Shown here piece after piece: positions 12,941 to 46,920 of a DNA stretch of 48,265 bases. How positions within the stretch are numbered: the first letter of the stretch is position 1; the number at the start of each line of letters is the position of its first letter. Made by a program: the position numbers and the translations under genes. Under the pieces are notes generated by a model. That model saw only the letters and a program-made list of their open reading frames with translations. It was not told the DNA's origin and searched no databases. Source of the DNA: Paramoeba atlantica (taxonomy: Eukaryota; Protista; Discosea); contig CDRNVI010000109.1 of assembly GCA_977017575.1 (NCBI GenBank), forward strand, positions 1-48,265, in the 5' to 3' direction.

Positions 12941-12990
12941 AGTAAATTCAAGAAAGTTTTCAAAAAAATCACTCTAAGTCTAGAAACATT

Positions 12991-13204: not shown

Positions 13205-13485
13205 ACCACTGTCCGGGTTAATATTCCTATACCCTCGTATTATTCCTACCAGGAATATTAAGTGTCCCAATGGTGCTTAATATTCCTACCCCCCCTCTCC
13301 CTGACACCTACCCCGTCTTTGCTTGAGATCCACAAAAATGATCCTTCGATATTCCCTTTTTGGGTGATTTTTTCATCAAAATAGCAAGCCCAACGCGCAC
13401 ACAGTCCCTAAAGGACCAAAATCGAGCACAAGAGCACAGAGCGCGCCGCTTCGCGGCGCGAAAGAATTTTTGGTCCTTTTCTGCT

Positions 13486-15473: not shown

Positions 15474-15559
15474 ATATTGAAAAAAAGTGAACCAAAACAG
15501 TGAAAATATAAAGAGAAACACAATAATAGAAAAAAAATAATAATAGAAGAAAAATTAAT

Positions 15560-16100
15560 AATTTTCTTTTTTAGGCTCTTCGTTAAACGCGGTGGTTGTT
15601 TTCAACTTAGAAGTCACTCATGCTGCGCGCTTCGCGTTGAAAACTACCACCGCGTTTAACGAAGAGACTAAAAAAGAAAATTTAGCCTGGAAAACGGAAA
15701 GATTATAGCCAAAAATAGCCGAATTTCGGGTAAAAATGGGGTGATTTTCGCGTATTTTTGCTCTCAGAGCACTAAATCCGACATTTGCGCGTGGGAAATC
15801 ACTCGTAGGCATGAATGAAAGCCCACCGAACGTATTGGGTAGAGAATACGACTCCAACCATACCATTCTTTCGATACAAAAATGCCCCTTTAGGTCCGAA
15901 AAATATTTTTTCACCTTTTTTAGTCAAAAATGGGTCATTTTGAGGGGCGCACCACGGTTCGAAGAAGTGATACCTTGCGAAAACAACTGCGGAGAAAGCT
16001 AGTGTAGGTCCCAAACTATCAAAATACAATAAGGGAAACAATTTTGGAAAAATATTTTTTTTGCCATTTTTTTCGCCAGGTTCAATTTTTTTTTTTTTTG
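15560..16100 (-). mobile_element. Palindromic cassette, 3' half, inverted relative to 15113-15473
   Basis: Reverse complement of the same modules. Confidence 0.85.
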
Positions 16101-17630: not shown

Positions 17631-17640
17631 AAGGAGTTCA

Positions 17641-18059
17641 TTGCGGTGGTTGTAAAACTACCGCTCTACACTCCATTATTGAAAACAAAGTGAACAAAAA
17701 CAGTGAAAATATGAAGAGGAACACAGTAATATAATAGAAGAAAAAAATATAAAAGGGGGCTCCGGTGGTCCAAAACTGAAAAAAAAATTCAGTAGGCTTC
17801 CATTCATGCCTACGAGTGATTTCCCACCCGCAAATGTCGGATTTAGTGCTCTGACAGCAAAAATACGCGAAAATCACCCCATTTTTACCTCGAAATTCGG
17901 CTATTTTTGGCTATAATCTTTCCGTTTTCCAGGCTAAATTTTCTTTTTTAGGCTCTCCGTTAAACGCGGCGGTAGTTTTCAACGCGAAGCGCGCGGCATG
18001 AGTGACTTCTAAATTGAAAACAACCACCGCGTTTAACAAAGAGCCTAAAAAAGAAAATT
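17641..18059 (+). mobile_element. Palindromic cassette, internally deleted derivative (about 420 bp) with both ends intact
   Basis: Starts TTGCGGTGGTTGTAAAACTACCGC and ends GAGCCTAAAAAAGAAAATT; the central modules are missing. Confidence 0.85.
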
Positions 18060-18171
18060 ATACGTGCTTCTGCCAGAAATCAAGTGCGCGTTCCCGGCGA
18101 ATTGGTCCCAGTCTCCAGCGTTATGAGATTTCTCTTCCTGGGCTAAGGAGTCTTCATTGCGAAGGAGTTCA

Positions 18172-18540
18172 TTGCGGTGGTTGTAAAACTACCGCTCTAC
18201 ACTCGATTATTGAAAAAATAGTGAACAAAAACAGTGAAAATATAAAGGGGAACACAGTAATATAATAGAGGAGAAAATATATAAATGGGGGTCGAGCAAA
18301 TTTTTTTGAAAAAATTAGTTTTCGAAAACAAACCGCAGAAATGGTAGCCGGGGTCTTGGCTCCCATTTTCCACCCCCCTACCCGGGGGTGACCCCCCCCG
18401 CGTATCCGCAGGACGGGTCCGCCAAGTTCGGATTTTTTCGGAAAAAAAATTTTGAATAAAAAATTCTGGTTGGCGAAAAAAATGGCAAAAAAATATTTTT
18501 CCAAAATCGTTTCCCCTATTGTATTTTGATAGTTTGGAAA
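18172..18540 (+). mobile_element. Palindromic cassette, 5' half
   Basis: 5' hairpin plus internal modules; truncated at about 18540. Confidence 0.85.
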
Positions 18541-18552
18541 AAAAAAAATCCA

Positions 18553-18928
18553 TGCACCACTCCATGTGCGTTACATGCACAGGGGCGAAGATCTTCAAGA
18601 CCTGGACCTGTATTCCTATGCAGGCATTGTCAGCGTAAAGAAAAAAAGAGCTGAGCTAGCTCAAGAAGAGCCGGATCATGATTCAGATTTTGAATCAGAG
18701 CCAAATCGCGGACGTCGTGCTAATGGGAGATACGCCTTTGAGGACATTAAAGTCCTCCCGGAATTCGAGCCTGGAGATATTGTTGAGCAACAGGTGCGCT
18801 CTTTGCACACTGTGCCAGCTATACCAGGTTTTCGCATATTGAGTTCTTCAAAAGAACCTGGGACACGAGCTCGAAGCCAGCTTCGAGTAGCGAAACAGAT
18901 GGTGGCATTGTTTTCCCCATGGACGAAA
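18553..18928 (+). pseudogene. Internal fragment of the Helitron RepHel ORF
   Basis: Near-identical to 39947-40334 (RYMHRGEDLQDLDLYSYA...MVALFSPWTK). Confidence 0.9.
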
Positions 18929-19230
18929 AAAAAATCATCAAAATCATTCCGGATTGCTCCGGATGGTCACTGGCAAGCCAGACCCTTCACAGACAGATTT
19001 GGAAGTTCCGAGGCCGACGTCCTCTACCAGTTTCCGCTTTTCCAAGCCGGCAACAACGTGCTGTTGCCAACAAGCTGCGTCGACGAACTGTACGTCAACA
19101 CGGCTTACCCAAGAGGTGTAAGCCGGGTAAGGGAGCTGGTTCCCTGAGGGGGGGGTCCGGGACGGTCCTCCGAGTACTGGGCCTAGTCGGTTCTCAGCCC
19201 AGCCTTTTAGAGTGAGGCCGCCAGGAATAT
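18929..19230 (-). mobile_element. SINE-A, 5'-truncated
   Basis: Body and tail match 37300-37604. Confidence 0.85.
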
Positions 19231-24731: not shown

Positions 24732-24732
24732 A

Positions 24733-25752
24733 TTGCGGTGGTTGTATAACTACCGCTCTACCCTCGATTGCGGTGGTTGTAAAACTACCGCTCTACCCTC
24801 GATTGCGGTGGTTGTAAAACTACCGCTCTACACTCGATTATTGCGGTGGTTGTAAAACTACCGCTCTACACTCGATTATTGAAAAAAAAGTGAACAAAAA
24901 CAGTGAAAATATAAAGAGGAACACAGTAATATAATAGAAGAAAAAAATATAAAAGGGGGCTCCGGTGGTCCAAAACTGAAAAAAAATTTTGAAAAAAATG
25001 GGGGGTCCATGGGGGGGGTCCAGGGGGGGGGGTCCAGGGGGGGGGGGGCATGGTCGATCAAATTTTTTCGAAAAAATTAGTTTTCGAAAAAAAACCGCAG
25101 AAAGGGTAGCCGGGGTCTTGGAGCGCATTTTCCACCCCCCTACCCGGGGGTGACCCCCCCGCGTATCCGCAGGACGGGTCCGCCAAGTTCGGATTTTTTC
25201 GGAAAAAAAAATTTTTCGAAAAAAAATTCAACTTGGCGAAAAAAATGACAAAAAAAATATTTTTCCAAAATCGTTTCCCCTATTGTATTTTGATAGTTTG
25301 GGACCTACACTAGCTTTCTACGCAGTTGTTTTCGCAAGGTATCACTTCTTCGAACTGTGGTGCGCCCCTCAAAATGACCCACTTTTGACTAAAAAAGGTG
25401 AAAAAGTATTTTTCGGACCTAAAGGGGCATTTTTGTGTCGAAAGAATGGTATGGTTGGAGTCGTATTCTCTACCCAATACGTTCGGTAGGCTTTCATTCA
25501 TGCCTGCGAGTGATTTCCCACGCGCAAATGTCGGATTTAGTGCTCTGAGAGCAAAAATATGCGAAAATGACCCCATTTGTACCCGAAATTCGGCTATTTT
25601 TGGCTATAATCTTTCCGTTTTCCAGGCTAAATTTTCTTTTTTAGGCTCTTCGTTAAACGCGGCGGTAGTTTTCAACGCGAAGCGCGAAGCATGAGTGACT
25701 TCTAAGTTGAAAGCAACCACCGCGTTTAACGAAGAGCCTAAAAAAGAAAATT
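24733..25752 (+). mobile_element. Complete palindromic cassette (non-autonomous Helitron-like element)
   Basis: Four tandem 35-bp 5' hairpin units, A-rich module, (GGGGGGTCCA)n, GC-rich module and 47-bp-arm terminal palindrome (25630-25676 / 25706-25752). Confidence 0.88.
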
Positions 25753-26662
25753 GAAAAAAAAGTGAACAAAAACAGTGGAAATATAAAGGGGAACACAGTA
25801 ATATAATAGAAGAAAAAAATATAAAAGCGGGCTCCGGTGGACCAAAACTGAAAAAAAAATTGAAAAAAATGGTGGGTCCATGCGGGGGACTCCAGGGAGG
25901 GTCCAGGGGAGGGTCCAGAGGGGTGGTCCAGGGGGGGGTCCAGGGGGGGGACCAGGGGGGTCATGGTCGAGCAATTTTTTTCGAAAAAATTAGATTTCGA
26001 AAAAATACCGCAGAATGGGTAGCCGGGGTCTTGGCTCGCATTTTCCACCCCCCTACCAGGGGGTGACCCCCCAGCGTATCCGCAGGATGGGTCCGCCAAG
26101 TTCGGATTTTTTCGGAAAAAAAAAATTGAAAAAAAATTCAACTTGGCTAAAAAAATGGTAAAAAAATTATTTTTCCAAAATCGTTTCCCCTATTGTATTG
26201 TGATAGTTTGGGAACTACACTAGCTTTCTACGCAGTTGTTTTCGCAAGGTATCCCTTCTTCGAACTGTGGTGCGCCCCTCAAAATGACCCACTTTTGACT
26301 AAAAAAGGTGAAAAAGTATTTTTCGGACCTAAAGGGGCATTTTTGTGTCGAAAGAATGGTATGGTTGGAGTCGTATTCTCTACCCAATACGTTCGGTAGG
26401 CTTTCATTCATGCCTGCGAGTGATTTCCCACGCGCAAATGTCGGATTTAGTGCTCTGAGAGCAAAAATATGCGAAAATGACCCCATTTTTACCCGAAATT
26501 CGGCTATTTTTGGTTATAATCTTTCCGTTTTCCAGGCTAAATTTTCTTTTTTAGGCTCTTCGTTGAACGCGGCCGTAGTTTTCAACGCGAAGCCCGCAGC
26601 ATCAGTGACTTCTAAGTTGAAAACAACCACCGCGTTTAACGAAGAGCCTAAAAAAGAATTTT
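25751..26662 (+). mobile_element. Second tandem palindromic cassette, lacking the 5' hairpin
   Basis: Head-to-tail copy of 24878-25752. Confidence 0.88.
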
Positions 26663-30030: not shown

Positions 30031-30057
30031 AAAGGAAAAATGAAAATCAAGGTACAG

Positions 30058-30134
30058 AAACTGTATCTTGTGTGATGCATGCGTCCCGTAGTACACTTCT
30101 TCATGTGCTCATTTTTAAAACGTTCAGCGATTCT
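30058..30134 (-). mobile_element. Short CRE-like fragment
   Basis: Similar to 23947-24006 (IAE..KNEHMKKCTT). Confidence 0.6.
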
Positions 30135-31850
30135 ATGATGCGACACATACTCAGTATGGGAAACCCTTCACGTGTGCTCCCAACTGATACGAATGTTCCT
30201 CTGTTCGAAGTATGTACGTATTTCGCACAGATTCAAGTAACAACGGGTATTATCCCAGCAGATGAATACCATTTGGTATCAAGTGAGCATACACGTTATG
30301 TTCAAACAAAAGTCGACTGGATCGAATTTGCCCTCCCCTGCGAACAGAACAAGTTCAAGTGCACTTTGTGCGCTACCGAACAAATGTTCACGTTTAAGGG
30401 GCTCCAAAAGCATTTTTACCGTCATCCGCGGCATGCTGAATCTTGGGCTTTGGGAATGGATCATTCCCATTGCAAAGAGTGCCCCTTCTTCGAGGAGTTG
30501 CAAGGGAAACCCCCCATAAGACGTATCTCTCGAGTGCGAATCACAAAACCGAGAAGGAGGTGTACGACATGTTGATGGACCTTGAGGTGCAAGGTACCAT
30601 GTCTGCAGGCTTTCAGTGCACGAAATGTGCCACAGCACAGGGCGATCAAAACCCTGAACATCGTACTTTCAAGTATGATGACATGCGCAAACATGTTTTC
30701 GAACATGGGCGCGGAGATCACGACATTTGTGAAGCATGCTCCTTTTTCGAGTATGCATGGACAGCGTCCTATCTTGAAAACTCGAGAGCACATTTCGAAT
30801 ATCAGCCACGAACACGAACAGCAACTGTTCGAACTATGGCACGAGCTTCCCATAGCTCACGCAAGCGCAGGGACAGAATCCGGTTACAAGTGTGTTGCGG
30901 ACGCTTGTTCCGGTGAAGTGATGAGCCTCGGCGCTGCAAGAAAGCACGTCGAAAAAAAGCATATGAAAACAAGTGAACAAAGCTGTGAAGCTTGTTCATT
31001 CTTTGATGCGGGGTGTGTGCCCCACAAGAAGAACAATGCTGCGAAGTTCTCTGAGCACAAGCAATGGTACGCATTTTGGACAGAAAACGTCCTTGAAACG
31101 GAAAGCATATACCAGTGCAAACTGCCTGGGTGTTCTGAAACACCTCTTGAAAAAGAGGCTATAACGAAGCATGTAGCACAACATTGCGAAGGAATGCATT
31201 TATGTATTCCTTGCAATTACTTTGCTATCTTGCAAGATTTCCCGCCAGTCATGGTGAATACTAATCACGCGAATTCTCTGAAACATCGGGAAATGGCGTA
31301 TCTACATCCGAAATGGGAGCTTCACGTAAGTTTATCTAATGGATCGTATGTATGCGCACTGCACGCCATACGCAAACTAAGTGTCAAATCTATGATGCGA
31401 CACATACTCAGTATGGGAAACCCTTCACAGGTGCTCCCAACTGATATGAATGTTCCTCTGTGCGAAGTATGTACGTATTTCGCACAGATTCAAGGAACAA
31501 CGGGTATTATCCCGGAAGATGAATATCATTTGGTATCAAGTGAGCATACACGTTATGTTCAAACAAAAGTCGGCTGGATCGAATTTGCCCTCCCCTGCGA
31601 ACAGAACAAGTTCAAGTGCACTTTGTGCGCTACCGAACAAATGTTCACATTTAAGGGGCTTCAAAAGCATTTTTATCGCCATCCGCGGCATGCTGAAGCT
31701 CGGGCTTTTCGACTTCGGATCACACAAGCTGAGCGCAACAGAGCTCATGCAGTATCGCAGGATGATGAGCTGGAACGTGTGAAGCAATGCTCCACGCTAA
31801 CACTCACATCTTTTCAACTGATTGAGAATATTCTCATCAATTGTTTGTGA
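30135..31850 (+). CDS. Multi-zinc-finger region, probable N-terminus of the Helitron protein
   Basis: Repeated C-x2/4-C...H-x3/4-H motifs (CTLC...HFYRH, CVADAC...HVEKKH, CKLPGC...HVAQH), each followed by C-x2-C-x-F/Y-F. About 300 bp internal duplication (30135-30440 vs 31389-31697). One frameshift links it to ORF 31841. Confidence 0.65.
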
Positions 31851-31932
31851 TGAAACCCTCCAAAGCGATGGAGATAAAAGATGCTCTATTCAGAGACATC
31901 ATGATGGACATAACGTCGTTTACGTTAAAGGC

Positions 31933-32880
31933 AATTTCTTTTTTAGGCTCTTCGTTAAACGCGGTGGTTGCTTTCAACTTAGAAGTCACTCGTGCTGCGC
32001 GCTTCGCGTTGAAAACTACCGCCGCGTTTAACGAAGAGCCTAAAAAAGAAAATTTAGCCGGGAAAACGGAAAGATTATAGCCAAAAATAGCCGAATTTCG
32101 GGTACAAATGGGGTCATTTTCGCATATTTTTGCTCTCAGAGCACTAAATCCGACATTTGCGCGTGGGAAATCACTCGCAGGCATGAATGAAAGCCTACCG
32201 AACGTATTGGGTAGAGAATGCGACTCCAACCATACCATTCTTTCGACACAAAAATGCCCCTTTAGGTCCGAAAAATACTTTTTCACCTTTTTTAGTCAAA
32301 AATGGGTCATTTTGAGGGGCGCACCACAGTTCGAAGAAGTGATACCTTGCGAAAACAACTGCGTAGAAAGCTAGTGTAGGTCCCAAACTATCAAAATACA
32401 ATAGGGGAAACGATTTTGGAAAAATATTTTTTTTGTCATTTTTTTCGCCAAGTTGAAATTTTTTTCAAAAAATTTTTTCCGAAAAATTCCGAACTTGGCG
32501 GACCCGTCCTGCGGATACGCGGGGGGGTCAACCCCGGGTAGGGGGGTGGAAAATGCGCGCCAAGACCCCGGCTACCCTTTCTGCGGTTTTTTTTCGAAAA
32601 CTAATTTTTTCGAAAAAATTTGCTCGACCATGCCCCCCCCCCCCTGGACCCCCCCCCTGGACCCCCCCCCTGGACCCCCCCCATGGACCCCCCCCATGGA
32701 CCCCCCCCATGGACCCCCCATTTTTTTCAAAAAAAATTTTCAGTTTTGGACCACCGGAGCCCCCTTTTATATTTTTTTCTTCTATTATATTACTGTGTTC
32801 CTCTTTATATTTTCACTGTTTTTGTTCACTTTTTTATCAATAATCGAGTGTAGAGCGGTAGTTTTACAACCACCGCAATT
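31933..32880 (-). mobile_element. Complete palindromic cassette inserted antisense into the Helitron ORF at AATT
   Basis: Both termini are present; removing it restores TLKAI|NTINTRRFPVKVC. Confidence 0.88.
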
Positions 32881-33387
32881 AACACCATTAATTAAAGGCA
32901 ATTAACACCATTAACACACGACGATTTCCTGTGAAAGTATGTCCATTCAATGAATGTGACAAGTTCACTTCAAGGAACCGTGTGGGTTAACACATATTTA
33001 CATACTTGGAAACAGATGAATCATCGGGGCCCATATGGGTCCTTGTTTCCTTGAAAAAGAAGGGTGAAAAGAACGTTTATACGTTTATTACAAGTCCCTC
33101 TCTTGAAAATGAAATTGTTTCAATTTTGAATCGAGCAACTGTCACGAATGTGACGAATGCTAGCACTATTGACAGTGCAGCATATGCTATCATACAGATG
33201 TGTGAAAATACCATATTTCACGCAAGCGAAATATGCAAAGAATCTTCAGCCAATGAACTTCGGTACTGGCTTGAACGATGTTGCATCGCGAAATGTATTG
33301 TCAATTTTGACACATACGAAGTCAATGGAGATGGCTCACGTCGAACACGTTTTGACATTGAGCGCAATCCAAAAGACGCACTAAAAT

Positions 33388-36300
33388 CCAATCCATCCAA
33401 TCCAAAAGACCGACATATGTCGGTTAGAATGTTAAATGTTTTCCCCCCGAACTTATACTCCCTCGCCTTCCAGTTCAGAGTTTAGTAGTGCCTACTATTT
33501 TACTTTCACACAATACTTTTCCTTTATCTTCCTGAACTCTTCCTCAGGGTATTCCGAACCTGCTGGTGGAAACACATCTTCCGCCCAACTCTTACTATGA
33601 AGGCGCCCTCTTTCCACCAGTTTTCGCAATCTTCCCGCACAGCGTGACTTTAGCCTCGGCGCCACGCTTGGGTGCTGGATTGGTTTTCGTCTTTCCCTTT
33701 TCCAAGGTTCTATGTTTTATCAGCTTTTCCAAGGATTTGTCGATTTGTGATGCGTTGGAATCATTACTTGTTTTTCTCTTTTTCTGCTCAGGCGGTCGAG
33801 GAACTTTTCGCTCTGCAATCAGTGCTAACCCATCTGCCTCGTCGTTCCATTTATTTCCTGAGTGACCCTTGACTTTGCACATATATATTGAGTACAAATC
33901 ATGTTTTAAGGACCGTAATTTTCCGTCTAACTGGGAGAACAAATCTCCATTTAAAACCCCCTTGTAACCAACGATTCGCCGCCGATATCGAAGATTGTGA
34001 AAGAAGTCCCATAGATAGTAAGAGTCTGTATGAAACAGACAAGCGCATGGTTTTGACGGCAGTTGGAGAAGGGCATGCTGAAAAGCTAAGATCTCTACTC
34101 GCTCAATAGTGTCTGATTCCAATGGTATGGATATCCGTGAGGGTTCGCATCGTGGTTTTAGAACTACGATACCTATGCCACTTCGAATCTCTTTCGTATT
34201 TTTCATCGGCAGAACAGAGCCATCGGTATAGATTTGTATGGCTTTATAGGCTGGAAAAGGCACATTTGATTCTTCAACGAACTGTAATTCTGAAGGACTT
34301 TTTTGTTTTTTAGCTTTGGCAAGAGCAGTTTTCCACTTTGCTGACCCAATTTTTTCGTATTCTATGAGCGGTTCAAGTTCACGTCGCAATTTTTCTGTCA
34401 GACGATACCAGTGTTCACGGTCTGACGCAAATACCAATGCCTCTTCCAGTGTAATGTTAAGATCCTTGAAGCAAGCCTCGCTTGGAGATAAATTGCGTGC
34501 ATTCGAGCGTTGTTTCCACTGTACGAGCTCTTGAAAATCACTGGAGTGCCTCAGCATGTGCCCGACGAGCTTGGCCCTCTGAACCTTGTGTATAGTAGAA
34601 AAGCGCTCAGTTTCAAGATACAGAGAAGCATTCGGGTAGCTCATTCCGTATTCATCTAATCTGTTGCATTGGCAAACTATTCTTCTCATGTTGTTAACTT
34701 CAACGTCAATTCTTCGGAGCATGGATTTTGAAATAGAAAGTGCACCGGTCCCAAAGTTTAGCACCGGATATACTATTGAATCGTAGAGGCGCAGCTTAGT
34801 CTCCGGGCTAAGTGGTGAAGACCAAATACCATTCATTCGAAAGAGAGATCCCCAAGCTAGTTTCAATCGATCTTTAACTGTAGATGTAAAATCATTTTCC
34901 TGCCGATGCCCTAAGTGTTTGTAAGACGTAAGTTTCGGAATCATCCCCGAGAATTTGCTGTTCAGGCTCTCGCTGCTCATTTGAGATTTACCAAAAGTTA
35001 ACCAGGCTGTCTTGTTTGCTCCGACGGCTAGTTTCAGATTAGCTTTGCGTGACTCTTCAGCTACATTGTCTATCATATTTGTCAAACCACTCTTCGTGTC
35101 ACTAAATAACGCTATATCGTCCGCATACTCAATGTCACTCAGGCGCTTTTCATGAAGACCCCGCTTTCTTGTACCCCCAGAGCTGAGAAGAACCCCGTCT
35201 GATTTTCCATCTAGCGCTTTATTGAGAATTCTATCTAACACCATAACGAACAGATAAGGCGCCAATACATCCTTGAAGTATTCCTGTAGTGATAGGGAAA
35301 GGTTTTGTGATTCCAATAGAAGTTCGTACAGTGCCTTTCAGCTCATCGTATATAGACATTATCATCTTAGAAAGACATGGACCTACTCGAAATGCATGCA
35401 AACTAGCTTTAATAGCAGCGAACGATACCGAAGGAAATGCTTTAGCAAAGTCTATAAAAGCTACAGAAAGGCCTTGTCCTCTGAATGCTTTGGTTTTTAT
35501 TTCGTTCATGATAATCTGAGCTCCAGAAGTCGCTCGGTTTGGTCGAAACCCATACTGGTTACCCCGAAGAGACTTTTCAATGTTGGGTCTAATGCGGGAG
35601 AGTATCATATGATTCATGAGCTTAACTACGCTATTTACTACGCATATAGGCCGCCAATTCTCAATGTTAGTGAGGACTCCTTTCTTTGGGATGGGTATTT
35701 GAAGAGTGTTGCGCCAGGCTTCCTCTGTGACCCCCGTTAATTATATTCAGGAGATGCGATCTCAGATCAGGGTGGACCGCTATAGCTTGAAGGGCTTCCA
35801 TTGGTATTCCGTCACTTCCCGGTGTTTTTCCTCTTCTGAAATGTTCTAAAGACGAGAGCTGATTCGTCTTCGTTTTGGGATCACTGACTCGCCATTTAAT
35901 TTGAATTCTGGCTATAACACAACAGTGAGTAGTAGGAATGGGTGCCTTGATCACTTTGTGTCGTTGAACTGCCGATGCAAATCTGCTACAAATAAATATG
36001 TGATCTAACTGCCTTAGAGCTTTGTTTGGTAATTCGCATGTCCATTTCCGACTACTTGGACAAAGACTGTGCGCAGACTTACAGTCTATAGAACAAGAAA
36101 GTCCTTTAAGACGGGCGGCCGCAATGGGATCTAGATCCTTATTTGTTATATGTGTCAAAGGTGCATTAAAGTCGCCCAGTACAATTAATGGGCGACGCGG
36201 GTTGCTTTCCCTTATTCTCAAGCAGCAACGTTCGAGTTCTCCTTAGAACTCCGTAACCTCTACGTCCTTAGAATCGCGTGTAGGAGAATATACGTTAATA

Positions 36301-36629
36301 ACTGTTGCGACTCCTTCCTCCATCTCAAATTCACCCGACATAATCCTTTCACTGATTTTAGATACCTTAGACAAGGGAAAAGTGCTGACGAATCCCATTC
36401 CATTGTATGCATCCTTTGCGCGCGCTGGAATGAGGTTCAAGTGAAACTCTGCGTTCCGATATTGTACTTTGCGGTGAAGGACATCCGACTTTTCAGAAGA
36501 TGGGAATCTGAATCGCGTTTCCTGCAGGCCCAGAATATTTATTCCCTTCAGGCCAATGAAGGCAAGTACTTCGCAAAGGTGTCCGCACTTTCGTAGGCTA
36601 AACTCGTCTTCACCTTTCAGCTTAAGAGT
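33388..36629 (-). mobile_element. RTE-like LINE: APE, RT and RNase H; 5'-truncated
   Basis: 12-bp TSD ACGCACTAAAAT (33376-33387 / 36630-36641). APE: GLQETR, NVYSPT, LGDFNA, LDHIF. RT: QYGFRP, FIDFAKAF, GILQG.VLAPYLF, YADD. RNase H: YTDGS, ERVE, TDSYY, KVKGHSGNKWNDEAD. Confidence 0.9.
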
Positions 36630-36720
36630 ACGCACTAAAATACTTCTATGAGACTTCCTACATTGATCGTCTTCCTGGAAGACGAATCGTCTATACGAAG
36701 TCAATGGAGAACTAGTCAAC

Positions 36721-39700
36721 TATACGAAGTCAATGGAGATGGCTCACGTCGAACACGTTTTGACATTGAGCGCAATCCAAAAGACGCACTAAAATACTTC
36801 TATGAGACTTCCTACATTGATCGTCTTCCTTTGGAAGATTTTTCAGTCAGTACGGAAGCTCAAGAAAAGTGCATGAAAAGGTACAAAAAGAGAATGAACG
36901 ACGACCAACGTATCACAAGTTGTGATTCTTGTAAAGTTATTCTTCTCGAAAGTGACCTTCCGAATCCCGAAGCGCAACTTTGTGCAAGAGATCAAAGAAT
37001 AATGGACAAAAAAGGGAGAATTCCCCGCGGTCCAGTAGAACAACCTTCTACAAATCACCTTCCAGTACCCACGCTGGTAGAAGAGATCCTTCTTCAAAAG
37101 GTGTTTTTACACTGCACAATCATCAGTGTGCATAGGAAAGGTGGCGCATATGCCGCATCCTTGACGCCAGACTCCTCCTCCTGAGGCCAGGAGGAATCAC
37201 CCTCCCTTTCAAGAGGCGGAGGTGGCGGAGTGGCAAGAATTCAAAGTTTGAAGCACATGGTGCTCAGACGGCGAGTTCAAACCCGCTCATCGCAATATTC
37301 CCGGCGGCCTCACTCTAAGAGGCTGGGCTGATAACCGACTAGGCCCAGTACTCGGAGGACCGTCCCGGACCCTCCCCTCAGGGAAACAGCTCCCTTACCC
37401 GGCTTACACCTCTTGGGTAAGCCGTGTTGACGTACAGTTCGTCGACGCAGCGTGTTGGCAACAGCACGTTGGTGCCGCCTTGGACAAGCGGAAACTGGTA
37501 GAGGACGTCGGCCTCGGAACTTCCAAATCTGTCTGTGAAGGGTCTGGCTTGCCAGTGACCATCCGGAGCAATCCGGAATGATTTGGATTTTTTTTTTTTT
37601 TTTTTGAGGCCAGACACGAAGTTCACTGGACACTGGCTACAGCACGCGAAAACCTTGAGCTCTTGCAACTCGAAAGAGTTCCTGATCTCGAGGGCGCGAT
37701 TAAGAACATCCAAATTGTTTGGATAGCCAACGAACGGAGAACGAAACGTAGTCAAAGACTATGTTCTGCACAGCTGAGTGGCATATTCGGCGTGAAATCA
37801 GAGACCCTGAACACCTGGGTAAACTTCCTCTGTGAGCATAACCACGTGTATGCTCAACTGAAAGAGGAAGGAAAGATCAACGTTGTTACCGAGCAACATT
37901 GTAGAGACGTTGTCTCACATCTTTGGGATAGATCTGTTTCCCAGGAGGGTGAAAACGCCATCAACAGTATGGTCACCCAAGCAGTGGCTTCCGATACGTT
38001 ACATCGCGATCCTCGCGGTGAGATCACACGATCTTTTGTAACTGATCACAGCCTTGTAAGCAATGCGCCGTCGGGTGCGCAAATTACGCATGCCGTGGCG
38101 ATGCAACTGAAACAAAAAGAAGGTTTACTCAAGGAGTATACCGACATGGAAAACATCTTGCTCGGAGCATTTCCGACGCTGATGCAAAAGTACCCTTTTA
38201 ATGGTTCAACGTTTGAACTATATGAAATCAAGGAAATTCTAGAGCAATCGGATTCCCGATTTGCAAAGAATGCTGGATTCATATTTTACTGCTACGATGT
38301 GCTTCGGCGCCGTGCAGTCTCATCAGCAGTAGTGCAAAATCTGAAGTATAACAAAGATATGCACAGAAGCCTCATGAATTTTTGCAATGCTGATGCTTTC
38401 TATCACATTGTGCAACAGGCTATAAGGAACCCAAACAGTTCCGAGGCGAAACTTCTGGAAACAAAGTTTCTGTTCCATTTGTGCAAGTATGCGGAAAAAC
38501 GATACCCTTTTCGCCGGCAAAGCGAAAGGCATCACAAGGCCAGATCTACGCCTTATACAGGCGATACGGGCTGCCAAGTTACTGGATCACAGTGAGTCCA
38601 AACATGAACGATAACGTTCTAGCTCTAAGAATCATCACAAATGATGAGAGCGAAAAAATGCAGGAAATGCGGGCCAACCTTCTAAAGCGATCTGAGCTTG
38701 TGCAAGGGAATCCTGTCAGATCCACTAGCATTTTCGAACGGCAAATCCGTACTCTTCTTACCGAATTGTACGGAATGTCGAATGTAGATGAGGTAAAGAA
38801 GGAACGTGACGTTCTTGAAGGCCTCTTTGGTCGCCCTCGAGCATTTTTTGGTGTTGTAGAATGCCAGAAAAGAGGTGCGCTACACTTTCATAGTGTGCTA
38901 TGGCCGAATCTTAGTCCACATTACGTCTCCGAATTAATTCACATTGTGAAGGAGCACGATGGTCTCGCGAAGTCTTTGGGTACGACGATGCGCGCTGATC
39001 TGCCCGAGTGGGCGCAAAGGATCAGTAAGGAGCTTTACGGCCCTGCAACGCTCGACTACTCAAAGATGTATCGCGGAGGTCTGCATATCATTCCTGATGG
39101 AAAGGATGATTATTTCAGGGAACATGTGGCCAAATGTGCTGTTGATGTTCAGCAGCACGTTGGTCACAGACCCATGTGTTTCAAAATGAAAGGAAACATT
39201 AGCAAGAACAAATGCCGATATGGCATTCCATCCGTACTTCATGAAAATGAAACGGAAGTTAGAGAGGTTGAGGTTCAGATGGATGAATCCGGACAACCGG
39301 AATTCCGGCACAAGGCTCCAACACGGCCGATTAAAAATGATACCATTTGGCCAGTACTTGATGAAAGGTCTCTGATTGTGCTTCTGTGCAATAACCAGGA
39401 CCCGACACAACACACTAAATGGGGATCCATCACCGTTCAGTACAATAAAATACTCACTGCTTGCGTAAGATGCAATACATGTGTAGTTTTCATTGGGAGC
39501 GAAGGTCCCGGCATAAAAATTATGCAGTATCACATAAAATATATGAGCAAGGACATTGGTCCACCTGTGTACATTGTACCAGCACTTCGCGCAGCCAATG
39601 ACCACCTTCAAATGGGTCTGAATTCAGAGCACAGAGTGCAAACTGACATTCCGATGGCACGCTTAGTTCTACAGAAATTGTCGAACATGACACATCGAAA

Positions 39701-42333
39701 GATAGAAGTTTCAATCGAAATGGCAACTGCCTTTTGTCTCGGCCAATCCTCCGAGTATATGAGCCATAACTTCACATGGATCAATATGAACCGTGTAATG
39801 AAGTTCCTGGCAAATATCTCAAGTGAGTCAGATCACATAGATCTCGAAATCAGTGACGATGATTCGTCACAAGACTCTGATATGGAGTTCGACGACGGTA
39901 TCTTAGAGGCTCCTCTAATGATCACCGAACATGATTGTGCAGTTCTTGCACCACTCCATGTGCGTTACATGCACAGGGGCGAAGATCTTCAAGACCTTGA
40001 CCTGTATTCCTATGCAAGCATTGTCAGCGTAAAGAAGAAAAGAGCTGAACTAGCTCAAGAAGAGCCCGATCATGATTCAGATTTTGAGTCAGGGACAAAT
40101 CGAAGACGTCGTCGCGGACGTCGTGCTAATGGGGGATACGCCTTTGAGGACATTGAAGGCCTCCCGGAATTTGAGCCTGGAGATATTGTTGAGCAACAGG
40201 TGCGCTCTTTGCACACTGTGCCAGCTATACCAGGTTTTCCCATATTGAGTTCTTCAAAAGAACCTGGGGCACGAGCTCGAAGCCATCTTCGAGTAGCGAA
40301 ACACATGGTGGCATTGTTTTCCCCATGGACGAAAGGCTCACCGAGACATGAAATGACCCTAGAAGGGTTTGAAAAGCTTCTCAATGAAGCGAAAATAAAT
40401 ACGCCTGGAAAGTATGACATAATGTGCAATTTTCTTCGGCTTTTACATGCTTCGAAGAATACAGAGAACGCGGCAGATTTGTATCGACGCAAAGATGCTT
40501 GCACTCTGGGAGAAGCAAGATTAGAACGCAACATTGCGTACGAAAATGAGCTTGAAGTGCGAGAGGTTGAACCTCATCTTCAAGATGCTCTTGAAGCACA
40601 GCAGAACACTGCAGTGGTTAATGAAGAGCGATTGGTTCAGCAGAATGCATACTGCGAACTACAAACACGAGCTTTAACGGCCGCGTTAGGAGGTTCTACT
40701 GATAACTCCTCTGAAGAAAATGTTGATCTTGCATCGACAATGACAAGGACGAGGTCCAATATTTCAGTCATAAATGCGCGAGAGCGCTATGCTGAAATGA
40801 TCCAAAACGAACGATTTGCAACTTCGGCTCAATCTGAGCCAAGTGCACCAGTGGACAGAGCTCATTTTAATGAGGATCGTCCACTGGCTCGCAGTAATCA
40901 ATACGAAGAGATTACGTTCGATCGCAGCTACGTATTGCGCGAAGACAACAGTTCCATTGAACTGAATCAAGCACAGAGACAGTGCGTAAATCAAATTGAA
41001 GATTTACTAAACGGGAAACTAGACCCCGAGCGGAAATGTATGTTTCTGCTCGGTGGCCCCGGAACCGGGAAAAGTCTAGTTTCCCGTTTCATAATGCAAG
41101 AACTGGGAAGCCAATGTATTGCAATGGCGCCCACTGGGATCGCCGCATCAGTACTGCACTGTTGCACAATACACGCTTCCCTCTGCATACCGATAGGGGC
41201 TACTGCAAGAAATTTGAAACATCTTTCAAGCAGTAGCCTTCTACCATACCAACAAAGGTATGAGAAATGTCGATTAATCATAGTCGACGAAGTGTCAATG
41301 ATCAGCAAGTGTTTCCTTGCCTGTATCAACGCTAGGCTGCAGCAAATCAAAGGAAATGAGCAGCTTCCCTATGGAGGCATCAACATGCTCTTTGTTGGAG
41401 ATTTTTATCAGCTGAGACCAGTACAAGGAGCGTCTCTTACCATAGAAGATAGCTCTCCTGGTAATAATCCCATTTTTGAGAATATTTTTCAAGTCTCGTA
41501 TGTGTTTGAACTCAAACAACAAATGAGAGCACGACAAGACTGTATTTTCAGATATCTTGCGTCTTCTTCGAAAAGCTTCCAATGAGGGGTTGAAGAAGTT
41601 CATCCAATTGGTAAAACCTCTTACCTCTGAGGACCAAGAAAAGTTCCGCAATGCAATTGTCATTGTTGGAACAAATATTGAACGGCACAAGGTTATTGTC
41701 GCAATGGCAAGAAATTTTGCCAGACGTCACAATTGCCCATTGTTCGCATGTACGGGCGATAACGTCCAAGGTAAACTCATTGACACACACCCTGAAGCAT
41801 TTTCTGTATTTGTAAAAGGAGCACCCGGTGTAATCACCGAGAATATTGCTCCTTATACAATGCAAATTGCGAATGGGACAGTGATTGAAATGAGAGACCT
41901 TGTGTCAGACGATTTGTCATACGACACTATTGATGGTGTTCGTTATCTAAGAAAAGCCCCTTCTTTTATGCAATGCATTGAGAAGGGGTCAGGTGTAGAA
42001 TTTTACGCCAAAAAGGCGCAGCACCATGATAAGGCTTCCCAAGGAAACTTTCAAGTGGAATTGGGATTTGCCTATACGTATCACAAAGTACAAGGTATCA
42101 CCGTGAAGAACGGTGTTATTCTTGACTTGAATGATAAGGCGTGGTCCAAGAGACCGGAATTCGCCAAGCTCACAGTAGCAATATCCAGGGCACAATGCCT
42201 CGATGATATTCGAGTGCTCCCTGGCATGGGCACAGATCGCCCAGGAACACACCTGACTTCAGGTTACCATAGGCCTAAATTTCCGGCCATGGAAAAAGCA
42301 AATCGGCTTACCGATTTGACTTATCAATTCTAA
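36721..42333 (+). CDS. Helitron Rep/helicase (frameshifted, SINE-interrupted)
   Basis: LPVPTLVEEILL (DUF6570-like by recall); FGVVECQKRGALHFH (HUH); YHIKYMSK (catalytic Tyr motif); LGGPGTGKS, IIVDEVSM, GDFYQL, AYTYHKVQG and VAISR (PIF1). Confidence 0.92.
37191..37604 (+). mobile_element. SINE-A, full length, inserted in the Helitron ORF
   Basis: 9-bp TSD TGAGGCCAG (37182-37190 / 37605-37613); A box TGGCGGAGTGG 37223-37233; B box GAGTTCAAACC 37273-37283; T-rich tail. Confidence 0.9.
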
Positions 42334-42540
42334 GAAATTAGATTGAAACGATATTCTTAGGAAGACCTCTCTAGGGGGGAAGCAAGCTTGATACCGGTCA
42401 CAATCCCGGCGTCTTCAGCTTCGGCAGAAGAAGTGCGAGTGACCCCAACGCCCACGCGCCCTCTACCAAAAAAAATGTCTCCATCATAGCTGCAGAATTA
42501 CGCTCCGTCAAAATTGCTTTCAATTTTTTTTATCGAAATT

Positions 42541-42742
42541 TCAGAAGCTTGTTTGCTTCAAAAGCACCCACCGCGGCAGCGGGCCTGTACCGTCTCGAAG
42601 GGCGCCCCGGGCGGGCCCTTCAAAAAAAGATATCAGAAGCTTGTTTCCTTCAAAATTACATGTCACGAGGTAAAGCACCCACCGCGGCAGCGGGTCTGCA
42701 CCCTCTCGAAGGGCCCTCCGGGCAGGCCCTTCAAAAAGAAGA
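42541..42742 (+). repeat. Tandem duplication of about 90-110 bp, each copy with a GC-rich GAAGGGC...GCCCTTC hairpin
   Basis: AAAGCACCCACCGCGGCAGCGGG occurs twice. Confidence 0.8.
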
Positions 42743-42824
42743 CTTCTACGTTCATGTATTGCTTTTTAAGTTGAATGTTTCTAGACTCAGCTTGATTTTT
42801 TTGAAAACTATCTTTGAATTGACT

Positions 42825-43166
42825 ATGGCCTCGGCGGAGAATCAATCAACCAATGGCAACGACATTTCCGACAAGGAAAGAGATACAAATCGCAAAAGAG
42901 ATGATTACTTAGAATCTCTACACGTTTTGCGCTCTGCGCGCGAAGAGCGTGACGAGCGCTCAATCACAATAGAACACCTTCCCTCCTCTACGGCTAAAGA
43001 AGACCTTACCAAGCATTACGCTTCTTATGGCGAAATCGATTGCATAACAATCGTATCAAAAAAGGGACTGGCGCACGTGTGTTTTAGCACTACGGAAGAA
43101 GAAAAGCGTGCATCGAGCGTTTACTTCAAAGGGAAAAAGAAGAGAAACAGATACTTAAATTTCTGA
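42825..43166 (+). CDS. RRM-domain ORF, copy 2, inside the Helitron
   Basis: Near-identical to 12566-12940; lies between the RepHel stop and the terminal modules. Confidence 0.7.
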   Translation: MASAENQSTNGNDISDKERDTNRKRDDYLESLHVLRSAREERDERSITIEHLPSSTAKEDLTKHYASYGEIDCITIVSKKGLAHVCFSTTEEEKRASSVYFKGKKKRNRYLNF

Positions 43167-44501
43167 ATAAGTGTGTAAGAAGACGTTTGGAAGTGAAAGT
43201 TGGTTTAAAATTTTGAAGTCATGATTCGAAGGTTGGAGAAGGAAAGAAAACACTTTTCTTTCGAGAAATTTTCGGCTTAAATTCGTCCACAGGACCGTTT
43301 TTTTACGATTCATCGCATCAAAGTTTTTCTGTGGTTTTACTTTGTGTCTCGGAAACCCTCTGTAAGTATTTGTCACTTCGCATTTTCTAAACTCAAATAA
43401 ATACAATTGAAACTAAATTTGTTAAAAAAATGTTTACATTTACATAGCAGATCTACATTTGCAGTCATCACTTCTTCTATTTTTAGCCTGATCATTCAAC
43501 AAATATGATTTTGATGACTCAATTAGTGCATACCCAACGTACTGTCAGAAAAGCGTTCCGACATGGCATTAACTTCACCCCTGGCGTAAACCAAATGAAT
43601 CAAAACGAAGAAGTAAACCCACGAGGTAAATCCCCCCCCCCTTCAAAAGCCGGGGTGAATTCAAGTGCCTTTCAAAAAAAGAGGTCTCCACCCTGCTTCG
43701 TTCAAAATCGTGCGAACCGAAGGAAAACAAATGTGAGCGGAAATATGGAAAAACAACCCTATTTTTGCCCAACTATCGGCTCTTTTTGGACCAAATCCAG
43801 AATTATCCCTCTGGTTTCTTTTACTCTCCTGTCAAATTTTTCTTTTCTAAGCTCTTCGTTAAACGCGGTAAAGGAAAAAAATATAAAAGGGGGATCCGGT
43901 GGTCCAAAATTGAAAACAAAAATTGAAAAAAATGGGGGGTCTATGGGGGGGGGCATACCCTACCAGGGGTTGACCCCCCCTCGTATCCGCAAGACGGGTC
44001 CGTCAAGTTCCGATTTTTTCGGAAAAAACAATTTGAAAAAATTTTCAACTTGACGAAAAAATTGGTAAAAAGAATATTTTTCCAAAGTTGTTTCGCCTAT
44101 TGTATTTTTATAGTTCGGGACCTATTCTAGCTTTTTACGTCATTGGTTTTGCGAGGTGTAGCTTCTTGAAGCCGTGGTACGACTCCCAAAATGTCCCATT
44201 TTTGATCAAAAAATGCGAAAAAGTAATTTTTGGACACCAAGAGGTCTTTTTGAATCGTGTGGTTGGAGTCGCATTCTCGACTTTAGTGCTCTATATACAA
44301 AAATCACCCCATTTTTACCAAAAAATCGGCAATTTTTGGCTCAAATCCTTCCGTTTTCTTCCCCGTCCCTGGCCAATTTTCTTTTTTAGGCTCTTCGTCA
44401 AACGCGGAGGGAGTTTTCAACGCGAAGCGCGCAGCATGAGTGACTTCTAGGTTGAAAACAACCACCGCGTTTAACGAAGAGCCTAAAAAAGAAAATTATT
44501 T

Positions 44502-45499
44502 ATTGCGGTGGTTGTATAACTACCGCTCTACCCTCGATTGCGGTGGCTGTAAAACTACCGCTCTACACTCGATTATTGAAAAAAAAGTGAACAAAAACAG
44601 TGAAAATATAAAGGGGAACACAGTAATATAATAGAAGAAAAAAATATAAAAGGGGGCTCCGGTGGAGTAAAACTGAAAAAAAAAATTGAAAAAAATGGTG
44701 GGTCCATGGGGGAGGTCCATGGGGCGGGTCCAGGGTGGGGTCCAGGGGGGGATCCAGGGGGGGGTCCAGGGGGGGTTCCAGGGGGGGGACCAGGGGGTCA
44801 TGGTCGAGCAATTTTTTTCGAAAAAATTAGATTTCGAAAAAATACCGCAGAAAGGGTAGCCGGGGTCTTGGCGCGCATTTTCCACCCCCCTACCCGGGGG
44901 TGACCCCCCCGCGTATCCGCAGGACCGGTCCGCCAATTTCGGATTTTTTCGGAAAAAAAATTTTGAAAAAAATTTCAACATGGCTAAAAAAATGGTAAAA
45001 AACATATTTTTCCAAAATCGTTTCCCCTATTGTATTGTGATAGTTTGGGACCTACACTAGCATTCTCCGAAGTTGTTTTCGCAAGGTATCCCTTCTTCGA
45101 ACTGTGGTGCGCCCCTCAAAATGACCCATTTTTGACTAAAAAAGGTGAAAAAGTATTTTTCGGACCTAAAGGGGGATTTTTGTGTCGAAAGAATGGTGCG
45201 GTTGGAGTCGCATTCTCTACCCAATACGTTAAGTAGGCTTTCATTCATGCCTACGAGTGATTTCCCACGCGTAAATGTCGGATTTAGTGCTCTGAGAGCA
45301 AAAGTACGCGAAAATCACCCCATTTTTACCAAAATTCGGCTATTTTTGGTTATAATCTTTCCGTTTTCCAGGCTAAATTTTCTTTTTTAGGCTCTTCGGT
45401 AAACGCGGCGGTAGCTTTCAACGCGAAGCGCGCAGCATGAGTGACTTCTAAGTTGAAAACAACCACCGCGTTTAACGAAGAGCCTAAAAAAGAAAATAT
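44502..45499 (+). mobile_element. Complete palindromic cassette abutting the Helitron 3' end
   Basis: Two 35-bp 5' units, all internal modules, terminal palindrome. Confidence 0.88.
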
Positions 45500-46177: not shown

Positions 46178-46249
46178 GCGCACGTAGTCTAACGGTTAGG
46201 ATGCTTGCCTTCCAAGCACGCGGAACGGGTTCGACTCCCGGCGTGCGCG
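46178..46249 (+). tRNA. Eukaryotic-type tRNA-Gly(TCC), probably a retrocopy; its first 21 nt are also duplicated at 46157-46177
   Basis: Acceptor stem GCGCACG/CGTGCGC, anticodon loop CTTCCAA, T-loop GGTTCGACTCC, no CCA, followed by TTTT. Confidence 0.85.
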
Positions 46250-46257
46250 TTTTGCAA

Positions 46258-46920
46258 GGCGGAGGTGGCCGAGTGGCAAGAATTCAAAGTTTGAAGCACA
46301 TGATGCTCAGACGGCGAGTTCAAACCCGCTCATCGCAATATTCCTGGCGGCCTCACTCTAAGAGGCTGGGCTGAGAACCGACTAGGCCCAGTACTCGGAG
46401 GACCGTCCCGGACCCTCCCCTCAGGGAACTAGCACCCTTACCCGGCTTACAAAATCCAAAAATCCAAATCATTCCGGATTGCTCCGGATGGTCAATGGCA
46501 AGCCAGACCCTTCACAGACAGATTTGGAAGTTCCGAGGCCGACAGGGCTGGTTCCCTGAGGGGAGGGTCCGGGACGGTCCTCCGAGTACTGGGCCTAGTC
46601 GGTTCTCAGCCCAGCCTCTTAGAGCGAGGCCGCCGGGAATATTGCGATGAGCGGGTTTGAACTCGCCGTCTGAGCACCATGTGCTTGAAACTTTGAATTC
46701 TTGCCACTCCGCCACCTCCGCCCGGCTTACGCCTCTTGGGTGTGCCGTGTTGACGTACAGTTCGTCGACGCATCGTGTTGGCAACAGCACGTTGGTGCCG
46801 CCTTGGGCAAGCGGAAACTGGTAGAGGACGTCGGCCTCGGAACTTCCAAATCTGTCTGTGAAGGGTCTGGCTTGCCAGTGACCATCCGGAGCAATCCGGA
46901 ATGATTTTGATTTTTTTTTT
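46258..46920 (+). mobile_element. SINE-A, full length, containing a nested inverted SINE-A
   Basis: Head 46258-46450 and tail 46731-46920. Confidence 0.85.
46451..46720 (-). mobile_element. SINE-A, internally deleted, nested in another SINE-A
   Basis: 10-bp TSD CCCGGCTTAC (46441-46450 / 46721-46730). Confidence 0.85.

Follow-up and report, generated by a model that had tools for sequence, protein, structure and literature searches.

A decayed Helitron copy interrupted by three insertions

The window analysed here is a stretch of 48,265 nucleotides from the genome of Paramoeba atlantica (contig CDRNVI010000109.1). Positions 30132-44497 are occupied by a 5'-truncated and decayed copy of a Helitron-like element, whose coding segments, all on the + strand, were mapped by alignment to an intact copy of the same genome, named C43. 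The first segment (30132-31935, 95% identical to C43) carries the truncated zinc-finger array, recognizable by its CxxC...H...H motifs. Its start is rearranged with respect to the intact copy, 30132-30451 being a displaced duplicate of 31389-31688 (repeat D14). Further segments of the ORF follow at 32903-33387 (98.4% identity) and 36722-37172 (98.9%), and the last one, at 37604-42333, comprises the remainder of DUF6570, the Rep and the PIF1 helicase. The Pfam domains Helitron_like_N and PIF1 cover 38394-42333 on the + strand, and the HUH, YxxxY and Walker A motifs are located at 38865-38891, 39522-39551 and 41052-41075, respectively. The coding remnant measures about 7,470 nt (some 2,490 codons, the 5' end being absent), as against 2965 codons in the intact ORF. 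This measurement agrees with the first-pass annotation of the sequence, in which a zinc-finger array followed by an HUH Rep and a PIF1 helicase had been estimated at 2,400-2,500 codons with the 5' end missing.

These segments are separated by three nested insertions, each on the - strand. The first interruption (31936-32902) consists of a full-length cassette at 31936-32879, which matches the reference cassette at 94% identity over 948 bp, and of a 23-bp duplication at the junction. By comparison with C43, 398 bp of Helitron sequence were lost at this site; this insertion was therefore not clean, an observation that counts against the interpretation preferred below. The second is a LINE (33388-36721) with reverse transcriptase and RNase H domains (Pfam RVT_1 and RNase_H), delimited by overlapping C43 alignments and bordered on each side by an identical 74-mer, a perfect target duplication (33314-33387 and 36722-36795). 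The third is a SINE-like repeat (37173-37603) with a poly-T at its right end, identified from its flanks and from repeat families D9/D10 and I6; the C43 alignments overlap by 12 bp, indicating a target duplication of about that length. The three insertions had been proposed from the sequence and are real, but the accompanying claim that their removal rejoins one frame did not hold, because three frameshift indels (4 bp deleted at 37634, 2 bp inserted at 38473 and 2 bp deleted at 41539, relative to C43) and the 398-bp deletion remain.

Downstream of the main ORF, a second small ORF of 113 aa (42825-43166, + strand) resembles an RRM domain, with an RRM_1 score of 19.1 bits that is slightly below the 20.7-bit cut-off. 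It is uninterrupted in the four copies compared (C43, C41, C52 and the window copy), and its single-sequence AlphaFold model, although of low confidence (pLDDT 52.6), displays the order beta-alpha-beta-beta-alpha-beta. The element terminates with a region built from cassette modules, as had been recognized at first reading (43827-44497, + strand, 79-92% identity), and closes on a complete palindrome at 44374-44497 (folding energy -47.6 kcal/mol, z = -12.5).

The cassette itself is a 0.9-kb non-coding element that has both ends in common with the autonomous element. Besides the Helitron 3' end, nine further copies or fragments were located in the window, in keeping with the ten or so initially counted. 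In addition to the nested copy, one cassette with two 5' hairpin units adjoins the Helitron 3' end (44502-45497, + strand, 89% over 1003 bp), as established from the junction sequence. Two others stand in tandem on the + strand, the first with four hairpin units (24732-25752) and the second devoid of hairpin (25753-26662). Cassette alignments revealed fragments at 13486-13861 (- strand, 81%), 15113-15486 (+), 15560-16093 (-), 17640-18059 (+, with an internal deletion) and 18171-18537 (+, 3'-truncated); a RepHel fragment is found at 18548-18934. The hairpin unit measures 35 bp and is repeated 4.1 times at 24732-24877, and the G-rich minisatellites have a period of 12-14 and a variable copy number. 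At the scale of the genome, a first look returned at least 1,595 candidate matches in 45.7 Mb, and dozens of full-length copies are 96-98% identical.

An intact autonomous element in the same genome

The intact copy C43 spans about 12.9 kb and encodes, besides the small RRM-like ORF, a protein of 2965 aa in a single ORF. The N-terminal 900 aa or so of this protein contain at least 16 zinc-finger-like motifs and are followed by DUF6570 (43.5 bits for a cut-off of 24.3), the HUH/Y2 Rep (Helitron_like_N, E = 5e-21) and the PIF1 helicase (E = 8.5e-25), the latter being matched by PIF1 helicases of the PDB at E values down to 5.6e-24. The AP endonuclease domain Exo_endo_phos is absent from this protein in Pfam searches down to E = 0.1, so that the lack of a C-terminal endonuclease noted in the truncated copy is a property of the intact protein as well. 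A twister ribozyme was considered as a component of the window element and rejected: the intact copy gives a sub-threshold match (24.4 bits, E = 0.033, where the gathering score is 67.2) and the window copy no match at E <= 1.

Three full-length copies (C43, C41 and C52) are 96-99.7% identical to one another and lie within unrelated flanks. Each of them starts with ATTGCGG and stops at the palindrome; other RepHel copies thus end in cassette modules just as the window copy does. The autonomous element also contains two internal cassette-like modules, both of which have lost the right palindrome arm. The family is young and probably active.

The window copy is very probably a decayed autonomous Helitron of the HLE2 group, and the 0.9-kb cassettes its non-autonomous, HINE-like derivatives. 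The cassette might instead be an independent foldback or MITE-like repeat, or a dispersed satellite, which a Helitron captured or landed beside, the RepHel protein not being its mobiliser. Cassettes are indeed found in head-to-tail arrays, carry minisatellites and occur in both orientations beside Helitron copies, and the modules of the Helitron 3' end are only 79-86% identical to them. This origin is nevertheless highly improbable. The three full-length Helitrons begin and end exactly at the cassette termini in independent flanks, and free cassettes match the 5' cassette module of the autonomous element at 95% identity. Moreover, the cassettes show neither terminal inverted repeats at their extreme ends nor target duplications, and their palindrome has a strictly single polarity for which a foldback or cut-and-paste element would have no need.

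A 5' hairpin and a long 3' palindrome

The 5' end common to the autonomous element and the cassette reads (A)TTGCGG, and a mini-hairpin with a 9-bp stem begins there 2-3 nt from the terminus. This hairpin (-8 kcal/mol, z = -4.3) is kept at 47 junctions. Their common 3' end is a palindrome of about 120 nt with arms of about 47 bp and a fixed polarity, which folds in the cassette at -50 kcal/mol (z = -11.5). The 5' hairpin, the G-rich minisatellite and the 47-bp-arm palindrome described by the first-pass annotation were thereby all recovered. The two ends are related in sequence: each half of the 5' hairpin is exactly reverse-complementary to the inner part of one palindrome arm, over 10 nt and 11 nt, and the partner in the right arm is situated about 30 nt from the end. 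These inverted partners sit within the arms of one large palindrome and not upstream of a separate short hairpin. Matches of the palindrome to microRNA families were dismissed as generic long-hairpin matches, far below gathering scores.

The 53 distinct palindromes share one polarity, which 55 of the 57 strand readings show; the two 'flop' readings are opposite-strand reads of the two copies with extended arms. A parvovirus-like flip/flop isomerism is therefore ruled out. The right arm is ragged and stops 0 to 16 nt past the arm core in the 53 copies. In two of them it is extended further, by 35 nt in L049 and by 21 nt in L017, located at C52 (about 37 nt if two mismatches are tolerated). Both extensions copy the left-side body of the element itself, and that of L017 includes a non-usual cassette variant present on both arms.

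This raggedness and these self-copied arms could be taken as signs of a different processing of the ends, in which the 3' palindrome of a linear single-stranded intermediate folds back and primes synthesis; the family would then represent a new mechanistic class and not a Helitron2 variant. Such a class is very unlikely, given that long extensions concern just two of the 53 copies, that template switching or gene conversion can lengthen a palindrome once it is inserted, and that ragged ends also fit imprecise termination, the terminal T/A runs of Helentrons being variable too (PMC4067079). The fixed polarity also speaks against replication of the parvovirus flip/flop type. The proposal that the ragged, sometimes self-copied arm is the footprint of a linear single-stranded intermediate, whose free 3' end was folded back and extended by a polymerase, is unlikely as well, if slightly less so. 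A hairpin-primed step, if true, would stand outside current Helitron models, and the family using it would be the first active Helitron family to be characterised in a kinetoplastid-like protist.

Insertion sites

At the 5' junctions, an A and a T precede GCGG in 47 of 47 cases and the third base is a T in 46 of them, giving ATT; at the 3' junctions, the base after the A-rich arm is a T in 40 of 43. This tabulation is compatible with the TT targets suggested at the outset. Empty sites were obtained from paralogous or allelic loci 99-100% identical to L038 and L040, a small sample of three. All read TTATT, with an overlap of only 2-3 nt and no target duplication, as the initial failure to discern a clear one at the cassettes had indicated. 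A fixed 3-bp 'ATT' duplication is ruled out, many 3' junctions having no ATT. A search for the empty allele of L024 returned none, and the allele of L049 gave a partial match only. Insertion occurs at TTA^TT, which can just as well be written T^T, the cleavage point being ambiguous within (A)TT; the empty sites are compatible with an A^T target, as in Helitron1, as well as with a T^T target, as in HLE2.

Protein relatives and classification

An exhaustive search of 1.84 billion representative proteins was carried out with the 2965-aa Rep-helicase, and its nearest full-length proteins outside the family are 28-31% identical. Word-based searches returned only metagenome fragments of the same family and weak matches. 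Domains were then scanned in a set of 23 proteins, made up of the query and the 22 full-length relatives closest to it: DUF6570 is present in 19 of the 23 and an endonuclease domain in none. Throughout this set, the alignment columns of the HUH histidines (HFH), of the YxxxY tyrosines and of the Walker motifs of the helicase do not vary. Rep motif 2 reads RGALH in the window (38865-38891), where the relatives have RGS/A/N followed by L/P/A. The reading RGALH, as opposed to the RGSPH of Helentrons, is thus correct, yet it is not distinctive, since five of the 22 nearest relatives share it.

According to the HELIANO paper, DUF6570 is a marker specific to the HLE2 clade (PMC11417382). On the basis of this marker, of the domains present in its closest relatives and of the terminal architecture, the family appears to fall in the Helitron2/HLE2 group, without endonuclease. 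The initial assignment to the Helitron2/Helentron and HINE model is supported by the shared ends, DUF6570, Helitron2-like inverted repeats and T-flanked empty sites free of target duplication. The presence of an undescribed lineage, inside HLE2 and not outside it, is plausible in view of the identity of at most 31% to any full-length protein other than its own. The kind of element is already known (Helitron2-type); unusual are the very long end hairpin and the kinetoplastid-like host.

Proposed mechanism

By analogy with the models of Helraiser and Helitron2, the Rep would nick the 5' end, the + strand would be peeled off by the helicase, the complete palindrome would act as termination signal and the released strand would be joined into a T-flanked target. 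The role of the complete palindrome as terminator, itself an analogy, is supported by the autonomous element: both internal modules are deprived of the right arm, so that a complete palindrome exists only at the true 3' end. Head-to-tail arrays and ragged 3' arms may result from imprecise termination or read-through, and rare copies would have had their arm extended, apparently by fold-back copying. This exaggerated, putative terminator of 120 nt, with internal copies tolerated only without the right arm, offers a natural test of the Helitron stop signal. Pairs of autonomous and non-autonomous elements are often hard to establish for HLE2 elements. Here, an autonomous element with an intact ORF is accompanied by a young, high-copy non-autonomous partner, with both ends and three empty sites defined.

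The host possesses a spliced leader of the kinetoplastid type; a protein-atlas comparison of an HSP70 placed it no more finely than among eukaryotes. A survey of 57 genomes detected no DNA transposons among trypanosomatids, and earlier reports of Helitrons were not borne out by it (PMC12278014); only uncharacterised Helitron-like ORFs are mentioned in a diplonemid (PMC10161547). In such a host, a characterised and probably active Helitron family would thus extend the mobilome known for this group.

Comparison with known systems

The elements of the Helitron2 group (Bao and Jurka 2013, PMC3627910), such as Helitron-1_CRe with Helitron-1N1_CRe of Chlamydomonas, likewise combine a RepHel without endonuclease with a hairpin at either end. 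Their 5' hairpin is formed by a short ATIR lying 0-3 nt from the 5' end, whose inverted counterpart is located some 30 nt before the 3' end; they have a 5' terminal T, insert next to a T without target duplication and have abundant non-autonomous partners of 0.6-0.9 kb that are 95-98% identical to one another. In Helitron2, however, the 3' ATIR lies upstream of a short hairpin, whereas here it is contained in the descending arm of the palindrome. The present family also differs by its ragged 3' terminus and by its large protein, with the long zinc-finger N-terminal region and distant relatives described above.

Helentrons and their HINE or DINE-1-like partners (Thomas et al. 2014, PMC4067079; oyster Cg_HINE, PMC7492417) resemble the present family in having a 3' palindrome, terminal T/A bases in varying number and, 2-4 nt from the 5' end, palindromic subterminal inverted repeats. 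A microsatellite or tandem-repeat module likewise occupies their centre, their TT-type target is compatible with the sites observed here, and their non-autonomous copies are far more numerous than the autonomous ones. In contrast to Helentrons, the C-terminal AP endonuclease is missing here and Rep motif 2 has an A in place of their diagnostic S (PMC4067079), and the 3' palindrome of HINEs is limited to 5-10 bp.

Helitron1, as exemplified by Helraiser (PDB 7lcc), also joins an HUH/Y2 Rep to a PIF1 helicase in one protein and has a presumed terminator in the form of a 3' hairpin, no target duplication, a target that can be described as A^T, and tandem arrays with 3'-truncated inner copies (PMC7492417). 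The present family differs by the absence of 5'-TC and CTRR-3' ends and by the presence of the 5' hairpin and DUF6570, and its similarity to Helraiser (HLE1) is confined to the helicase (E = 1.8e-7), the Rep region having no match. Finally, the Proto-Helentron or HLE2-reverse elements FoHeli3-5 (PMC11417382) are endonuclease-less HLE2 with DUF6570, exceed 10 kb and also show an unusual stem-loop placement; in the present family, by contrast, it is the 3' end that bears the large palindrome, the 5' end having only a mini-hairpin.

An intact autonomous Helitron and its non-autonomous cassettes

Helitron proteins joining an HUH/Y2 Rep to a PIF1 helicase (RepHel) are encoded by many copies in the assembly to which the window belongs (45.7 Mb, 248 contigs). 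In the window, the autonomous element is represented by a dead copy; an intact one occurs elsewhere in the genome, on contig C43. There, a single ORF with an ATG start, encoding 2965 aa, lies in an open frame that runs without interruption for 2975 codons. The N-terminal region of this protein (residues 41-888) carries 16 zinc-finger-like motifs of the CxxC...H...H type, several of them lying within near-identical 89-aa repeats. Downstream are found DUF6570 (residues 1350-1475), Helitron_like_N (residues 1601-1821) and PIF1 (residues 2509-2702); no endonuclease domain was detected in the protein by domain search. All four Helitron copies also have an intact second ORF, a small one of 113 aa (42825-43166 in the window). 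Its RRM_1 score is slightly below the cut-off, and a low-confidence structure model displays the beta-alpha-beta-beta-alpha-beta order.

The limits of the element are given by the comparison of contigs C43 and C41, which are 96-99.7% identical between two sharp points and have unrelated flanks outside them. The same sharp ends, again surrounded by unrelated flanks, are found on contig C52. The full-length Helitron bounded in this way measures about 12.9 kb. Its 5' terminus is (A)TTGCGG, next to which lies a mini-hairpin, and its 3' terminus is formed by a complete palindrome about 120 nt long. Both ends are exactly those of a non-coding cassette of 0.9 kb, whose reference copy occupies positions 24840-25752 of the window. 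The window also contains a tandem neighbour of this reference, a nested copy and five fragments, as well as a copy that adjoins the Helitron at its 3' end. Genome-wide, a first look yielded at least 1,595 candidate cassettes; full-length copies with 96-98% identity to the reference number in the dozens.

The cassette modules proposed in the first-pass annotation were all recovered, namely a hairpin unit (35 bp, 1-4 copies), an A-rich stretch, a G-rich minisatellite (period 12-14, variable copy number), a GC-richer body and the palindrome. The folding energy computed for single-stranded DNA is -50 kcal/mol for the palindrome (z = -11.5) and -8 kcal/mol for the 5' hairpin (z = -4.3). On direct reading, each half of the 5' hairpin matches an inner arm of the palindrome exactly as its reverse complement: the left half (GCGGTGGTTG) matches the inner right arm, and the right half (AAAACTACCGC) the inner left arm; a subterminal inverted repeat is thus present at both ends of the element.

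In the vicinity of the RepHel gene, a sub-threshold match to the twister-P1 ribozyme was observed 41 nt past the stop codon of the intact C43 copy (positions 5851-5921 of the stretch L014), with 24.4 bits versus a gathering score of 67.2 (E = 0.033). The window copy (~42375-42445) differs there from the intact one by two substitutions and gave no twister-P1 match at E <= 1.

The decayed copy of the window

Alignment to the full-length copies of C43, C41 and C52 places the decayed element at 30132-44497 on the forward strand; compared with them, its 5' part is absent and its start is rearranged. Domain search detected Helitron_like_N, PIF1 and a weak DUF6570 match, on the same strand, at 38394-41582 and in the subsequent frames. 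Three insertions are nested in this copy: a cassette on the reverse strand (31936-32879), accompanied by the loss of 398 bp and the duplication of 23 bp, a LINE (33388-36721) flanked by perfect 74-bp target duplications, and a SINE (37173-37603). The alignment upheld the anatomy previously read from the sequence alone, as well as its codon count (~2,490 codons). The claim that excising the insertions gives one frame fails, because three frameshift indels (at 37634, 38473 and 41539) remain, together with the 398-bp deletion.

The terminal palindrome

Two cassette-like modules are found inside the autonomous Helitron, upstream of the ORF. The first terminates where the left palindrome arm ends; in the second, left arm and loop are present and the right arm is missing, so that the complete palindrome is confined to the true 3' end of the element. 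On this arrangement of the sequence, the complete palindrome is taken as the probable stop signal, the lack of a right arm in the internal modules being the best internal evidence for such a role.

The asymmetric loop of the palindrome has one direction relative to the element body in 53 of 53 distinct palindromes sampled (55 of 57 strand readings), the two 'flop' readings being opposite-strand reads of two copies with an extended right arm. This fixed polarity excludes a flip/flop mode of replication. In the two extended copies, the right arm is lengthened by 35 nt in one case and by 21 nt (~37 nt with two mismatches) in the other. These extensions duplicate the left-side body of the element itself, and in the second copy both arms share a variant unlike the usual cassette sequence. 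Fold-back copying would fit these extensions; since they amount to two cases only, growth of the palindrome after insertion explains them equally well.

On contig C37 (L039, ~3550-3720), a cassette-type palindrome core was noticed whose two flanks are foreign to the cassette and perfectly complementary to each other over at least 45 nt, forming a much longer perfect inverted duplication with the hairpin at its centre.

Insertion sites and probable recent activity

At 47 junctions with genomic flanks, the bases preceding GCGG are ATT, the A and the first T being found in 47/47 and the final T in 46/47. The two bases ahead of ATT are T or A in 41-42 of these junctions. The 3' arm of the palindrome is ragged, retaining 0-12 bases of an A-rich tail past the arm core, and is directly followed by a T in 40 of 43 solitary copies.

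Two genomic stretches, L038 (contig C29) and L040 (contig C49), have flanks that are 99-100% identical, and each contains insertions absent from the other. They are probably allelic haplotigs. Their comparison provided three clean empty sites, with a TTATT target in 3/3, a junction ambiguity of 2-3 nt and no target duplication at any of the three. Two notations of the element and its target fit the data equally: TTGCGG...A(n), with insertion at A^T, and TGCGG...A(n)T, with insertion at T^T. Three observations argue for a recent activity of the family: the reciprocal presence and absence between near-identical loci, the preservation of the 2965-codon ORF, and full-length copies that are 99.7% identical.

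Several cassettes adjoin a different repeat in the flanks of L023, L030, L038 and L040. This repeat ends with ...CCTAGGGACAC, has an internal inverted copy, and is possibly a terminal-inverted-repeat DNA transposon with AT-rich targets like those of the cassette.

Classification and relatives

DUF6570 is reported as specific to the HLE2 clade, whose members have short terminal inverted repeats and a 3' stem-loop, and insert at T-T (HELIANO, PMC11417382). By definition, Helitron2 elements have a hairpin at each end, that of the 5' end being formed by an ATIR 0-2 bp from the terminus; their 3' ATIR is located 20-30 bp from the other terminus, and they lack an endonuclease (PMC3627910). In Helentrons and their non-autonomous HINEs, the subTIRs are palindromic, the centre holds repeats, the target is TT and the terminal Ts are variable (PMC4067079). 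The present family agrees with these features except for its ambiguous target dinucleotide and the placement of the 3' inverted repeat, which here lies inside a very large palindrome, whereas that of Helitron2 is upstream of a short one.

An exhaustive search of 1.84 billion representative proteins (E <= 0.001) returned 16,745 relatives of the Helitron protein. Fragments of the same family among them are 84-95% identical, and the best full-length non-self relatives 28-31%. A domain scan of 23 proteins, comprising the query and the 22 full-length relatives nearest to it, detected DUF6570 in 19, OTU in two and an endonuclease in none. Rep motif 2 reads RGALH, as in five of the 22 relatives; the Helitron1-type RGLPH is found in none of the 22, and the match of Helraiser to the family protein is limited to the helicase. 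The autonomous and non-autonomous elements form a real and well-defined pair, very probably of the Helitron2 type. What sets this pair apart is a terminal palindrome of 120 nt with a ragged arm, an N-terminus that is very long and rich in zinc fingers, a second gene of RRM-like type, and the lineage of the host.

Host lineage

A 19-nt pattern matching the kinetoplastid spliced leader in its 3' part is scattered over the assembly in 793 copies, versus 2 for the reversed control. The upstream sequence often resembles the rest of the leader and the downstream sequence is varied, which suggests either retroposed trans-spliced RNAs or SINEs/LINEs with a leader at their 5' end. One copy lies in the window (30045-30063, reverse strand), some 20 nt past a SINE-like repeat. 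The HSP70 genes of the assembly have no introns and form tandem arrays, and such genes are also present on C43, the contig of the intact Helitron. The leader copies and the intronless tandem HSP70 genes support a kinetoplastid-like (euglenozoan) host. In 57 trypanosomatid genomes, no DNA transposons were found and reported Helitrons were unconfirmed (PMC12278014); in Diplonema, Helitron-like ORFs are mentioned only as uncharacterised (PMC10161547).

Neighbouring sequences

Colinear decayed genes of bacterial type occupy positions 3128-9214 (reverse strand, GC 37-45%) within this eukaryotic contig. They correspond to an HlyD membrane-fusion protein (8255-9214), an AcrB gene in at least five ORF pieces (5306-8199), pieces of a DapD-like hexapeptide transferase (4263-4972) and an M20 peptidase in three pieces (3128-4259), all on the reverse strand. 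This block has the appearance of inserted bacterial DNA, possibly from an endosymbiont, that has decayed into pseudogenes; alternatively, the assembly would be chimeric here. A minisatellite of about 14 copies of an 18-bp unit resembling TTTTTTGTAAGACCATCG (12981-13231) lies between an inverted fragment of the Helitron RRM-ORF region (12618-12968) and a diverged cassette end (13486-13861). Finally, a tRNA (50.7 bits, 46178-46249) is located directly upstream of SINE-like repeats (46257-46920).
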